From positions 3,596,001 to 3,660,000 of the forward strand of contig OZ176053.1 in the NCBI GenBank assembly GCA_964247055.1: 64,000 bases of DNA. Reading direction: 5' to 3'. Numbering within the stretch: the stretch's first letter is position 1; each line of letters opens with the position of its first letter. The notes under the pieces were generated by a model. That model was given only the letters and a program-made list of their open reading frames with translations. It was not told the origin of the DNA and searched no databases. The translations under genes were made by a program, and so were the position numbers. Below are positions 11,219 through 41,568 of the stretch, piece after piece. This stretch comes from Paragordius varius (taxonomy: Eukaryota; Animalia; Nematomorpha).

Positions 11219-14200
11219 ATGGTTCTTGACAAAAGTGTAATAGACGAATGGTTCGATTTTGCTATGGGTATAACTAAGAATGCTGGAGAAATGATGAAAG
11301 ACGCTTTTTACAAAGAAAAACACATAGATATGAAACAAACATTCGCCGATTTGGTCACTCAAACGGATAAGGACATTGAAAATTATCTTTTTACCGAAAT
11401 ACGGAAAAAATATAAAGATCATGAGTATTTTTTATCTAATGCATTAGATGTTTGGGTGAGGAAAGTGAGAAAAGACCCTGGACAGATGCGCCAACATGGA
11501 TAGTTGATCCAATTGATGGTACTACAAATTTTATTCATCAAAATCCAAATTGTGCTATTAGTTTAGGGATATCGTGCAAAAAAACAGTATTATTAATAAT
11601 AATTTTAAGATTGTGATAGGAATCGTTTATAATCCAATGAGAGATTTAATGTACACAGCTAAACTAGGTCAAGGATCTTTTTGTAATGGGAAACCAATAC
11701 ATGTTACTGATGTAAAAGGTTTAATATTGGTATATCTTTAGATCTCAATAAAGCACTCATATTTACGGAGGTTGGTTCTTTAAGAAAAGAAAATATTTTG
11801 GATATGAAATTAGATAATTATGCCCGATTAGCCCGGTTATCTCATGGGTAAAAAATTAAATTTAAGCAATTAATTTTACCAACTCACCAATATATTTATA
11901 TATATATATATATATATATATATATCAAATAAAGAAGGTCCTATATATGTTATAAAACTCAATAATACTATATCCTCACTGATACTTTAATGAATTTTCG
12001 TTTTTATGGTTTTTTGCCGTTATTTATTTTTCAGCTTGTACAGAATTATTGAATCAAAAATTTACCAATATTATTGACAAAAAATTGAGGTTTTCTAATT
12101 TTCTTTATTAGTATTTTAAAAATTTAACTTTTTGATTAGTGAAATTATTTATCAATAATTTTTTGTTTTTTAACATTAACGGTATAATAGATTTTATATT
12201 ATTTGATCATGACTTTTTATTAGCTTGTTTCATTCTTTATAGCCAACTATCATTAAAAATATAATTATCATAAAACAATATATCACAATGAAGATGAGTT
12301 AAAAGTATCAAAGTTTTAAATTATATTTTAACGTTTTTACGAAAAGAGTAATAAAGTTCTATAAAAGTTTACAGTTTAATGAGCTAAAATTTTATAATAG
12401 TTGTTAAAACGGTGAACTTATAGTATTTTGATTTTGCGCCACTGTATATTTAATGTATTTAAGATCGCCTTTTTTGTTAGTTTTAATAGGTTTTCTTTAA
12501 ACCTATAATAGGAATGAAAGCGTTTTAAATAAATTTTTTACTAAGAAAGATAGGATACAGACTGAATTTAATCTTATTTGATAAGATATTTTCAAAAAAA
12601 CAATTTTTATTATTCAATTCTCTCAATTTTCTTAATATTTTGAACTTCATGATTATCAGCCATGTTAAAATAAATGATGTAACTTAAGCCCGTACTCTTT
12701 AATAAAAGAAAAAGGAAACTGTGTTTTGCATCAAAATAAAGTATAATTATTTAGGTAATTAAAAAAATTATTGTGTTCTTACTTTAAAATCTAGCTAATC
12801 AAATCCTTTACATATAAAGATAAATTGTATTTTTATTAAATTGTATTTTATGTAATAACAAAATTTCTATCATATTTGTTTTACGCCCTTTTAGCCGTAT
12901 CATCAATACTATCAGTACAATAGCTTAAGAATATAATGAGTTATTTATTATAACAAAAAATTTAGATTATTAAATGCGTAAACACATTTGTTATCGTTTT
13001 AGGATATATTAAAGAATATTTTATAGCAATTTAATATTATATACTTAATTTAACAGTGAATAATTTATTATATCAATATGCTATAGGATATAATTAACAT
13101 ATTTTTTGATTGCTAAACATTACACTAGACAACAAATTTTAACTTTTTTTAACTGCTATTTTTGTAAATTTAAAATTTATTTCATTAAAGTATATAATTA
13201 ATATATCTGAAAAGAAAATTGGTCTAGCATGAAAGAATTTTTTTATATTAGAGTTTATCGATAATTTTTGGCCCCGATTTAACATTAAACTCGAAATTTC
13301 GAAAATTAAAAGTTTTAGATATGAAGCCATGTATTTTATATCATTCGAAAGAGCGCAAAAAACTGCATCTTTTAAATGGTAGTAAGTCATTTAAATCAAT
13401 CGGATGTAAAGGTTATTTGGATTTAAATGGTCGAAATTTTCAATCCTTAAATAAGTCAAGAATTTTCACAGACAAACTAATTTGAAAATCATATAAATTA
13501 TTTTAATATAATTATTAGGGTAATATTAGTATTTGATTTGAAAAAAAATGTTTGAAAAAGCTTTTGGTTTGCTTTTTTAATAAAAATTATCATTATCATA
13601 AATATTTTACCTAGTGGATACTGAAATGCATAGTTATAACTGTAAATTTATTACATAATGGCTATAAAAGATCAAAATTACCTTAAACTTTGTTTTTATC
13701 ATAAAATTTTGAAATTATCAGCCTCGTAAAGAAAATAAATTAATATTGATGAGATGGTAATTTTTAAAAAAACAAAAAACTTAAAAATGGCTGTTTTGAG
13801 TGACATAAAAGCAATAAAAAAATGTTTTAATCAAAAAAACTTTCTTGTGTTATCTTTTTTGGACATTCATCACCATCTAAAGAAAGTTTGAGCTATTTTC
13901 ATCCATTAGTTTTAAAAATATAATAATTTAAAAAAATGCTCTCGCTTCGCGCGTTTGTCGGTCTCTGTGTCCAATATTAACTGTCGATGTAATACATATT
14001 AGTATGCATTTTATAGATTTTTTAATACTCTTTCGAATGATATATTACAAATGGGCATTGCTTGTATATTTTCAAAGAAAAACATTTTTTAGTTAAATTT
14101 TGATAAAGAGGGCGCATAATCAAAAAAATCAAATTATACAAAATTCTTCCATCGGTTTATAATTTTTATTTCAGATTTAATGTTAGAATGATACTAAATA

Positions 14201-38593: not shown

Positions 38594-41568
38594 ATGATTT
38601 ACAAAGTGCGTTTATTTTAAAATTTAGAAAATTAAACAAGTTATTGCTATTTCTTTGGGAGGATCTTTAGTATTCTCTGGACTTGCAATTGCTAACGGTA
38701 ATGAAGATTTTTATGAGAAAATTTTTATGCCCTGTTTATTTAAATTACCTCCGGAGTTAGCTCATTTTATTACCCTTAAGTTTTTAGAATACGGTCTTAC
38801 GCCCCAATATCATTTTGAAACCGAAAGACTAGTAAATATACTTTATTATATAGAAATTTAGAATAAAAAATTTTGCATTTGAAAATCCAATTGGATTGGC
38901 AGCTGGTTGCGATAAAAACGGAATAGCCATAAATGGATTTTTTAAGATTGGTTTTGGCTTTGTTGAAATAGGATCTATCACACCTTTACCTCAACCTGGA
39001 AACGATAAGCCAAGAATGTTTAGGTTGATACCCGATTTAGCCATTATAAATAGGTATTTAAGTGTTTATGTAAATACTAGGTTAGGATTTAATAATCTTG
39101 GTTTCAACGCCGTTTCAACCAATTTAACGAGCACAAATATTCCAAAAACCAAAATTCTAGGTAATATTAACCTTATATAGAACAAAATTAGGTGTTAACA
39201 TTGGCAAAAACAAATTATCCACCGAGCTTTATAATGATTATGTTAAAGGATATGCTAAATTTGCATCACTCGCCGATTACCTTGTTATTAATGTTTCGAG
39301 TCCTAATACACCAGGTTTAAGGGATTTACAAAAAGAACATCACATTGTCGAATTGATTCGTGAATTGGGATTAGCCAAAACGCATTTTTCGAAAGGTTAG
39401 TCGACATATTCATATGTTTTTTCGTTTAGTTCAAAAAGGATTATTAGTTTGTGTTTTAATTTTATTTTATATTTGAAAAAGATTACTTGTAGTAATCGGA
39501 AATTCATTTTAATAAATTCATTTAGTTATAGCTGAATTCTAATTCTAATATTAATAAATATTATTTGAGTGTCCAAAAAATCTGAAGCGTTTAAGTATTT
39601 TTTATAATTTATAATTTTACATATTTTGACATAAATGTTCATTATTTTTATATATTAAGAGAATCAAAACTGCAAAGTACCGCTCCTTTTTATTAAAATA
39701 TCTCCTGATATGACTCAATCTGAAAATGATTCTCTTATCAAAGCTGTTTTAAACAATAAAGTAAGTAATAATATTTTTGTAATCCCTTTTTGAAAATTAT
39801 AAATATGTCACGATATTTGATATAAAGCTTTATTTGTAATTTAGGATATCATTGATGGTTTAATAATATCAAATACCACGATTACACGACCCAAAGATCT
39901 CAAAAGTTCTTTTGCTCAAGAAACTGGAGGTTTAAGCGGGAAACCATTAAAACAAAAATCCACAGACCTAATAAAATATTATTACAAAACAACTAGAGGT
40001 CCTTCTTTTTCTGTTGATATGCATGAATAAGTGTATTAATGGAATCGAAAATCAAACACATATTTATATTTCTATTTTTAACCTCAAATATTATATGGTT
40101 TTTGAAAAATGTAAGCGCATCCATAACTTTATGCATAAATTAAACCAAATATTTATTTAGTAAAAATTCGAGACTAGTTTTATGCTCATTTATTTGCTTT
40201 ATGCTAGCTATATTAATTTTTTCATAGTTAAATAATGATAAACAAGTAGTCCTAATTAAATTTTATATATGTGCCCCATAATATAATTGTAAAAATAATT
40301 ATATCAAAGAGTGGTATTACATTATCTTACAAAAAAGATATTTTAATTTTCAATAACTTATAGTTATATTATTCCATAACTTATGAATGTAAAGTTTTGC
40401 AAGGCAATTAATTATATTACATATTTTTTACTAGGTACAATTCCTATAATTGGTGTGGGGGGAATCATGAGTGGTCAAGATGCTTACGATAAGATAAAAG
40501 CGGGCGCTTCTTGTGTGCAACTTTATACGGGTTTGGTGTATTATGGACCGCCTTTGGTTAAAAAAATATTAGTGGAGTTAGATGGATTGCTAGAGTAAAA
40601 TTTATTTTTTAAATGCTATATGTAGTAAAAAATGTTATAAATTATACGAATAAAACATTTTTGTAATAGATCATAAATTATCAACCTAAAATTTTATTTA
40701 ACTCGCTTATTAATCATAATAAAATTATAGTTTTTAACATTTAATATATATATATACCACATACCTTTGAACACTCTATTATCTCCGAACAATTCAAATT
40801 TACCCTCAAAATAAGTTGTATTTTTGGATATCAAAAATTATTTATATTTTTTAATTTTTAAAAAATGAAATTTTATTTAAAATTAACATAATACCGATAA
40901 AAATGGCATGCATAAAAAAGTTTTTTATATCAATAATATGATAGATTGTCTAAAAACATATATACACTTTAAATCACCCTTGAACAATTTAAATTCACCC
41001 TAAAATAAATTATGTGTTTTTTAAGATAAAAAATTACCTATATTTTTAAAAATTGAAATTTTGTTTAAGATTAAAATAATTCTGAATAAAAATTAAGCCA
41101 TAGAATATTTTGTCTTAATGATGAGTTATATTAGTCCGAAAACGTGATTTTGAATTGTTCCAGTGTGATGAGTTCAAGGGTGAATTTGAATCGTAAATGA
41201 TTTATATTTATTATTAGGGGTAACTAAAAAATTCAAAAGTGAATTAAAAATGTTCAGGGTGAAATTTGAAATGTTTAAGTATGGTTTTAAGGCGTTAAAA
41301 TTTTTGGTTGTAAATGTTATATATATAAAACCTTAAAAAATAATTACCGTAGATTAAGTTTTTTTGAAATCCACCAAAAATTTTAAGTGTTATTTAAGAA
41401 TGTAATTAATTATATTGTAAATAAACTAATTTATATATTAATATATAGATTTTCTAAATTATTATATTTCTTATATTGGCCTTTTTATTTTATAGAAAAG
41501 ATGGTTACAAAAACGTTTCAGAAGCTATTGGATCGGATGTTAAATTAATAAATGTTGTAAATAAATAA
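38594..41568 (+). CDS. DHODH: Dihydroorotate dehydrogenase (quinone), mitochondrial, 395 aa, 9 exons
   Basis: Exons 38594-38605, 38628-38831, 38854-39053, 39081-39160, 39192-39395, 39660-39760, 39845-39998, 40435-40594, 41496-41568 (1188 nt). Motifs [67 protein letters not shown]. Introns 1-4 are 22, 22, 27 and 31 nt. Confidence 0.96.
40750..41280. mobile_element. MITE family C, degenerate or compound copy
   Basis: TATACCAC start with TTCACCC and GGGTGAA units, in DHODH intron 8. Confidence 0.6.

Follow-up and report, generated by a model that had tools for sequence, protein, structure and literature searches.

Introns of 22-31 nucleotides, very probably spliceosomal, in five genes of a horsehair-worm-like genome

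The stretch of DNA described here is a 64,000-nucleotide (nt) segment of contig OZ176053.1 (GenBank assembly GCA_964247055.1, positions 3,596,001 to 3,660,000), referred to as the window. The GC content of the window is ~27% throughout and its genetic code is the standard one. Five genes were modelled between 11 and 41 kilobases (kb), which encode an inositol monophosphatase (IMPase), a FUS/TAF15-like RNA-binding protein, a GMP reductase (GMPR), RFT1, and a dihydroorotate dehydrogenase (DHODH). The coding sequences of all five are interrupted by very short segments that begin with GT and end with AG, hereafter called micro-introns; very probably they are true spliceosomal introns, belonging to a minimal class that has become shorter. 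The five genes are as follows.

11219..15638, plus strand: IMPase gene; six exons, 272 residues, modelled by spliced alignment to Escherichia coli SuhB, with a TAG stop at 15636-15638
Minus strand: FUS/TAF15-like RNA-binding gene with an RNA recognition motif (RRM), RGG repeats, and a RanBP-type zinc finger
29274..33382, plus strand: GMPR gene; seven exons, 358 residues, GuaC residues 2-345 aligned with no frameshift
36619..38552, minus strand: RFT1 gene; eight exons, 558 residues, Pfam Rft-1 matches on single exons and alignments to five RFT1 proteins
38594..40598, plus strand: DHODH gene; eight exons, 367 residues, modelled by spliced alignment to E. coli PyrD, with an open reading frame (ORF) and a stop codon

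The gene models were built with a custom protein-to-DNA aligner in which frameshifts were allowed and GT-AG introns could be as short as 15 nt. The references were E. coli GuaC, PyrD, and SuhB (K-12 record) and five full-length RFT1 proteins, together with human GMPR2 chain 2bzn_A, the Pfam families Rft-1 and RRM_1, and the DHODH chains of E. coli and Plasmodium. When a naive scan collected every GT...AG interval of 18-40 nt bridging open frames, the lengths were evenly spread and uninformative and, therefore, only homology-anchored models were used. It should be noted that, at a low intron penalty, the aligner places spurious in-frame "introns" (15-48 nt) within variable loops. In-frame introns were accepted only where they coincided with an exact gap relative to homologues and, for RFT1, only where the horsehair worm Gordionus also has an intron at that place. 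The spliced IMPase, GMPR, DHODH, and RFT1 models are free of stop codons, and outside the excised segments 0 frameshifts and 0 stops occur over ~1,550 codons.

The IMPase gene contains introns of, in order, 23, 23, 23, 2980, and 552 nt, and the GMPR gene contains introns of 22, 22, 22, 1315, 1506, and 145 nt. The micro-introns of these two genes are listed below.

11425-11447, plus strand: IMPase intron 1, 23 nt, phase 2; removal joins ...KDHE to CLGEES, and the retained segment leads to a stop
11587-11609, plus strand: IMPase intron 2, 23 nt, phase 0; the flanking exons meet without a gap between SuhB residues 110 and 111
11719-11741, plus strand: IMPase intron 3, 23 nt, phase 1; found by inspection, removal restores the frame and gives the clean 272-residue ORF
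29361-29382, plus strand: GMPR intron 1, 22 nt, phase 0; exon 1 ends on GuaC residue 28 and exon 2 begins on residue 29
29503-29524, plus strand: GMPR intron 2, 22 nt, phase 0; exon 2 ends on GuaC residue 68 and exon 3 begins on residue 69
29609-29630, plus strand: GMPR intron 3, 22 nt, phase 0; on human GMPR2 (2bzn_A), exon 3 runs to residue 107 and exon 4 starts from 108

Homology is weaker around IMPase intron 3, where SuhB is too distant, and the surrounding sequence presumably matches human IMPA1. For GMPR intron 3, an in-frame alternative of 31 nt (29600-29630) was rejected, as three residues would be lost relative to human GMPR2.

In the FUS-like gene, removal of the micro-introns around the RRM leaves a continuous domain. 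A further, probable micro-intron follows the first coding exon. The second exon consists of 37 nt and is followed by a long intron, and its join to the RRM exons is tentative.

20459-20483, minus strand: FUS-like intron just 5' of the RRM, 25 nt; the next exon matches Pfam RRM_1 positions 1-26, and the spliced frame is open
20345-20375, minus strand: FUS-like intron within the RRM, 31 nt; the flanking exons match RRM_1 positions 1-26 and 28-57
23666-23688, minus strand: probable FUS-like intron after the first coding exon, 23 nt, placed by reading-frame continuity

The introns of the DHODH gene measure 22, 22, 27, 31, 264, 99, and 436 nt in order. Alignment to PyrD gave the introns from 27 nt onward plus a single frameshift at 38838, which disappears when the second 22-nt intron is removed. 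The first 22-nt intron lies upstream of an N-terminal exon that encodes a membrane helix. This exon begins right after a stop codon and has no in-frame ATG upstream, and the intron is needed because the splice supplies the start codon. The third intron is in frame and stop-free; when it is read through, exactly 9 extra residues appear in the conserved INR-GFNN motif, as compared to the E. coli and Plasmodium DHODH chains.

38606-38627, plus strand: DHODH intron 1, 22 nt, after the first four codons, placed by frame logic
38832-38853, plus strand: DHODH intron 2, 22 nt, phase 0
39054-39080, plus strand: DHODH intron 3, 27 nt, phase 2, in frame; an exact 9-residue gap relative to homologues
39161-39191, plus strand: DHODH intron 4, 31 nt, phase 1; the frame is restored between PyrD residues 137 and 138

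The RFT1 gene provides a direct comparison with another genome. Its last exon found its best match among 1.84 billion representative proteins in Gordionus sp. m RMFG-2023 (E = 1e-25), which we take to be the Montseny horsehair worm, Gordionus montsenyensis. The Gordionus RFT1 locus (L006) was aligned both with its own RefSeq protein and with the RFT1 model of the window. The introns of the latter measure 22, 23, 27, 23, 25, 46, and 91 nt in order, and the same frame-restoring introns were chosen by all five full-length eukaryotic RFT1 references.

38471-38492, minus strand: RFT1 intron 1, 22 nt, phase 0; Gordionus has 41 nt at the same codon and phase
38362-38384, minus strand: RFT1 intron 2, 23 nt, phase 2; the flanking exons 2 and 3 match Pfam Rft-1 positions 14-40 and 43-147; Gordionus has 42 nt at the same codon and phase
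38218-38244, minus strand: RFT1 intron 3, 27 nt, phase 2, in frame, stop-free; Gordionus has 42 nt at the same codon and phase
38011-38033, minus strand: RFT1 intron 4, 23 nt, phase 0; the five references concur, and Gordionus has 44 nt in the same place
37881-37905, minus strand: RFT1 intron 5, 25 nt, phase 0; the frame is restored, and the alignment to Gordionus is interrupted at this very codon
37715-37760, minus strand: RFT1 intron 6, 46 nt, phase 0; Gordionus has 51 nt (L006 16855-16905) at the exact position
Minus strand: RFT1 intron 7, 91 nt; Gordionus has no intron

The codon and phase of five of these introns (22, 23, 27, 23, and 46 nt) are the same as in Gordionus, where the corresponding introns measure 41, 42, 42, 44, and 51 nt. 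RFT1 intron 3 is invisible to a frame-based reading because it is in frame and contains no stop; splicing recreates a split Cys codon that is common to Gordionus and abolishes a 9-residue gap. RFT1 intron 5 corresponds in the alignment to the beginning of a Gordionus intron of great length, which contains a reverse-transcriptase domain. For intron 6, a 46-nt and a 22-nt (37699-37720) option both restore the frame and the other references are split; the 46-nt option is preferred because the 51-nt Gordionus intron sits exactly there. The micro-introns of RFT1 occupy the same codons and phases as Gordionus introns and are therefore orthologous to ordinary short introns. For RFT1, this shows the micro-introns to be shrunken versions of a pre-existing short-intron class, ~20 nt shorter than their Gordionus counterparts.

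A tree of 59 RFT1 proteins, built under a site-heterogeneous model, placed the window and Gordionus sequences as sisters (SH-aLRT 99) on a long shared stem, and the pair lies inside a group with a rotifer, arthropods, and a sea cucumber. The published Gordionus genome has 26.93% GC and 63.8% repeats, which is in keeping with the character of the window, and the paper makes no mention of introns (10.1101/2023.06.26.546503).

Two features of the RFT1 loci are recorded here in their own right. The RefSeq model of Gordionus RFT1 (L006 3001-17913, 802 residues) carries a reverse-transcriptase domain in the middle of the protein, and it seems that a transposon within a very long intron was annotated as coding sequence. 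In the window, the starts of RFT1 (38552, minus strand) and DHODH (38594, plus strand) are divergent and 41 nt apart, and the two genes must have either an extremely compact shared bidirectional promoter region or overlapping 5' ends. DHODH was sought in the Gordionus RFT1 locus and was not found there.

The complete set comprises 18 GT-AG micro-introns within 11425-39191: six of 22 nt, six of 23 nt, and two each of 25, 27, and 31 nt. The mode is 22-23 nt, and 16 of the 18 measure 22-27 nt; the next intron sizes are 46, 91, 99, 145, and 264 nt, up to 2980 nt. Micro-introns make up 15 of the 25 introns in the four fully modelled genes (IMPase, GMPR, DHODH, and RFT1). GT and AG are present at the ends of all micro-introns (18/18) and of all longer introns (10/10), and the chance of finding the two together at fixed ends is ~0.17%. 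Strong support, in which the frame is restored and the flanking exons fall on adjacent reference residues, was obtained for 14 of the 18, and the two in-frame, stop-free 27-nt introns are based on exact 9-residue gaps relative to homologues. Multiples of three account for only 2 of the 18 (p = 0.03), a proportion that has to be read with the bias of frame-disruption detection against such cases. Retention of either 27-nt intron (38218-38244 or 39054-39080) would add nine residues and trigger no decay.

A preliminary description of this DNA had reported 22-23-nt GT-AG introns whose removal restores protein motifs, standing beside introns of kilobase length. Both observations hold, as 18 micro-introns were found at or near the claimed sizes and a sharp 22-23-nt class coexists with introns of up to 3 kb. 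The earlier size tally agrees with ours in its total and in its counts at 23, 25, and 31 nt, and differs in listing seven introns of 22 nt and a single one of 27 nt. The surplus 22-nt call in RFT1 (37699-37720) is probably wrong, since the 46-nt alternative matches the position of the Gordionus intron, and the 27-nt RFT1 intron missing from that tally is supported by a Gordionus intron at the same codon. The next sizes had been given as 84, 87, and 91 nt followed by 145 nt to ~4 kb; 91 and 145 nt were recovered, and the others are replaced by the series above.

The micro-introns display a reduced splice-site anatomy. Little is conserved at the 5' site beyond GT, with A at position 3 in 10 of the 18 and T in 7. 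The last exon base preceding a micro-intron is A in 9/18 and G in 8/18, whereas it is G in 9/10 of the longer introns (Fisher p = 0.04). Positions -3 to -5 are occupied by T in 12-14 of the 18 (14 at -3) and TAG is preferred, and A is found at -8 in 12/18 versus a 33% background (p = 0.004, uncorrected and from a small AT-rich sample). The GC content is 21% in the micro-introns and 31-34% in the flanking exons. The 3' ends look like a compressed version of the normal module of branch A, T run, and AG. The T at -3 to -5 and the A at -8 lend no support to the earlier statement that such introns leave no room for a branch point and a pyrimidine tract.

Our current hypothesis is that the ordinary major spliceosome would remove the micro-introns, with the whole intron recognized as one unit (intron definition). 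The 5' signal would be reduced to GT plus A or T at the next position. The 3' signals would be packed closely together, a probable branch A ~7-8 nt from the end being followed by a T run of 3-5 nt and then (T)AG. This geometry would place the branch A ~14-15 nt from the 5' site. The class may have originated by shrinkage from a short-intron class that was already present, as seen in RFT1. A scan of the window with Rfam returned no RNA family and no small nuclear RNA (snRNA).

The two size classes are ordered along the genes. In IMPase, GMPR, DHODH, and RFT1, every micro-intron lies 5' of every intron longer than 35 nt (p ~7e-6), and RFT1 of Gordionus shows the same order, with short introns before longer ones. 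The long introns carry repeats. A 21-nt repeat unit occurs in 19 copies in the window (at most 3 mismatches; none expected), and the copies are grouped in short tandem arrays of opposite orientation on either side of 150-200 nt, an arrangement reminiscent of miniature transposon ends. Most copies lie inside the long introns of the IMPase, FUS-like, and GMPR genes and, therefore, repeat insertion is one visible route to long introns. The copies are found at the following positions.

9468: 21-nt repeat
14548-14794: 21-nt repeat
16198-16409: 21-nt repeat
19417-19623: 21-nt repeat
31352-31598: 21-nt repeat
40786-41197: 21-nt repeat

Small introns would be small targets for insertion and enlarged introns bigger ones, and this alone could yield two size classes. 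The preliminary description had proposed a modified or dual recognition mode. In animals, however, a sharp peak of minimal introns followed by a long tail is commonplace, and no second mechanism has to be invoked for it. The last-exon-base contrast (Fisher p = 0.04) and the strong 5' polarity are hints, and only hints, of splicing in two classes, in which 5'-proximal micro-introns would be processed via an altered early step and the long, repeat-filled introns via standard exon definition. We regard such an arrangement as unlikely. Possible forms would be a U1 whose 5' end has been modified to accept A as the last exon base, an altered U2AF, SF1, or SF3B, or cap-proximal coupling.

We consider it highly likely, from the gene models and the Gordionus comparison, that the segments are genuine GT-AG spliceosomal introns of a minimal class (22-31 nt) in the horsehair-worm (Nematomorpha) lineage or a close ally. 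Several observations weigh against this reading. The listed RNA runs with the same species label share 0.00 of the sampled words at two loci. Two of the 18 segments (DHODH 38606-38627 and FUS-like 23666-23688) were placed by frame logic only, and both stop-free in-frame 27-nt introns could, in principle, be protein insertions. The branch-A signal comes from 18 AT-rich sequences, and its p value carries no correction for how many positions were inspected. The clustering at 5' ends is not universal; the first two introns of a Piezo gene farther along the window measure a few hundred bases each, and the second intron of the FUS-like gene is long rather than micro. Moreover, the lineage call is from a single gene with 39% identity, and compositional attraction in the tree is possible because both RFT1 sequences are of unusual composition.

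The genome could instead belong to a lineage for which introns of this kind are published, namely the myxobolid Myxozoa or the dicyemids. The median intron length in myxobolids is 22-27 bp and the GC content of Henneguya is 29% (PMC13644364), and 49% of the Dicyema genome is repeats (PMC6736024). However, the best RFT1 match and the strongly supported sister is the nematomorph Gordionus, with which the window has intron positions and the 5' run of short introns in common. Introns of 1-3 kb and repeat insertions are also frequent here, and the GC content of Dicyema is 36.7% as opposed to ~27% in the window. An origin in either group is accordingly very unlikely. We attach a still smaller probability to the idea that the segments are retained in mRNA, with the genes being pseudogenes or rescued by frameshifting or RNA editing. 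Splicing is deduced here from DNA, which leaves space for this idea, but five unlinked genes are interrupted 2-6 times each, in every case by GT...AG segments of 22-31 nt located exactly between conserved blocks. Several of these segments sit at RefSeq-annotated intron positions of Gordionus, and the ~1,550 codons around them contain no other frameshift or stop.

Inserted junk from assembly or sequencing errors would carry neither splice-site ends nor conserved intron positions. In addition, four DNA-like runs of the same organism contain 66-91% of the sampled 31-mers at two loci, introns included, and a second organism label contains 45-48% (two loci), although some of the DNA-like runs are possibly the source of the assembly. 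An artefact is thus extremely improbable. The same slim chance is given to programmed elimination of the segments from DNA, as with the internal eliminated sequences of ciliates. The size range does resemble that of the eliminated sequences of Paramecium. The ends are nevertheless GT...AG and not TA...TA, positions and phases match ordinary Gordionus introns, and the segments are present in the DNA-like runs. Minimal spliceosomal introns in a nematomorph or close ally remain the preferred reading.

The rest of the window contains additional genes and remnants. Micro-introns were absent from the parts examined of the Piezo gene and of a putative multi-pass membrane gene.

33.8-36.6 kb: putative multi-pass membrane (seven-transmembrane, 7TM) gene
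53747-64000: 5' part of a Piezo gene; Pfam Piezo_TM1-24, 354 bits, at 62775-63923
44276-46084: degenerate non-LTR retrotransposon remnant; RVT_1 (E = 1.5e-11) split over several frames
4706-6001, minus strand: open frame of 432 residues, Asn/Lys/Pro-rich, no Pfam match

The first coding exon of Piezo may include ~440 residues of low-complexity Ser/Asn/Pro-rich sequence upstream in the same frame, starting from an ATG at 53747. Two guesses, a "hAT transposase" at 26352-26960 and a "GPCR" (G-protein-coupled receptor) at 33760-36555, had no Pfam match and the labels were not used. An exact look-up of a 477-residue ORF of the window returned no record. A separate search for homologous proteins yielded nothing for the last RFT1 exon or for a 299-residue exon of the putative 7TM gene, the length window of that search being unsuited to queries as short as an exon.

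If splicing of the micro-introns holds true in RNA, this would be the third independent animal lineage, and the first ecdysozoan one, to have introns under the presumed limit of 30 nt. With Gordionus introns of 41-51 nt at the same sites, minimal intron length would have fallen by ~20 nt within one phylum, making the lineage a natural experiment on the lower size limit of the metazoan spliceosome. Standard gene predictors, with a minimum intron near 40 nt, and completeness tests would mis-model genes of this type if the minimum were not set lower. Part of the gene loss reported for Nematomorpha could thus be an annotation artefact, and counts of "lost" genes may need rechecking.

Introns of this size have precedents. 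In a survey covering 51 animal genomes, myxobolid Myxozoa and Dicyema japonicum were the only ones with introns of such small size. The survey concluded that they evolved at least twice in animals, and described in both a 5' signal that has been reduced to "GTa" and, ahead of AG, A residues of weak conservation; Nematomorpha are absent from its main text (Hadjez et al., Mol Biol Evol 2026, PMC13644364). A full-text literature search combining nematomorph or hairworm with intron found no relevant report, with most subscription journals outside its scope. The preliminary description had proposed an undescribed system, which does not stand; introns below 30 nt are published for Dicyema and myxobolids (PMC13644364, PMC6736024) and, therefore, the kind is known and only this lineage appears unreported.

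The introns of the myxobolids Henneguya salminicola, Thelohanellus kitauei, and Myxobolus rasmusseni resemble those of the window in being GT-AG with a median of 22-27 bp, in their ~GTa 5' signal, in the weakly conserved A a few bases before AG, and in belonging to AT-rich parasite genomes (PMC13644364). Unlike the organism studied here, myxobolids are cnidarians rather than ecdysozoans, with compact genomes of 20-200 Mb in which short introns form the bulk (PMC13644364). Here, the micro class instead stands beside many repeat-bearing introns of 0.1-3 kb and is concentrated at gene 5' ends. Myxobolid splicing was confirmed by long-read cDNA (PMC13644364), whereas the micro-introns of the window are known from genomic sequence. 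Dicyema japonicum is likewise a parasitic animal whose introns are very short (mean 38 bp) and whose genome is about half repeats (Lu et al. 2019, PMC6736024); it differs in being a spiralian with a 67.5-Mb genome of 36.7% GC, and 5' polarity is undescribed for it (PMC6736024).

Among ciliates, Paramecium has introns of ~25 nt (PMC8997360) and those of Stentor are "exceptionally small" (PMC9505925); as in the window, they are GT-AG and AT-rich relative to exons. Spliceosomal snRNAs are present in Stentor (PMC9505925). Ciliates and other protists differ in being unicellular, with uniformly tiny introns in compact somatic genomes, and many ciliates use alternative genetic codes, whereas the window uses the standard code. 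Gordionus montsenyensis is like the window in having short RFT1 introns at the 5' end followed by longer ones and in a similar style of genome. Its short introns measure 41-51 nt versus 22-46 nt here, the first four introns of the window RFT1 being ~20 nt shorter and under 30 nt.

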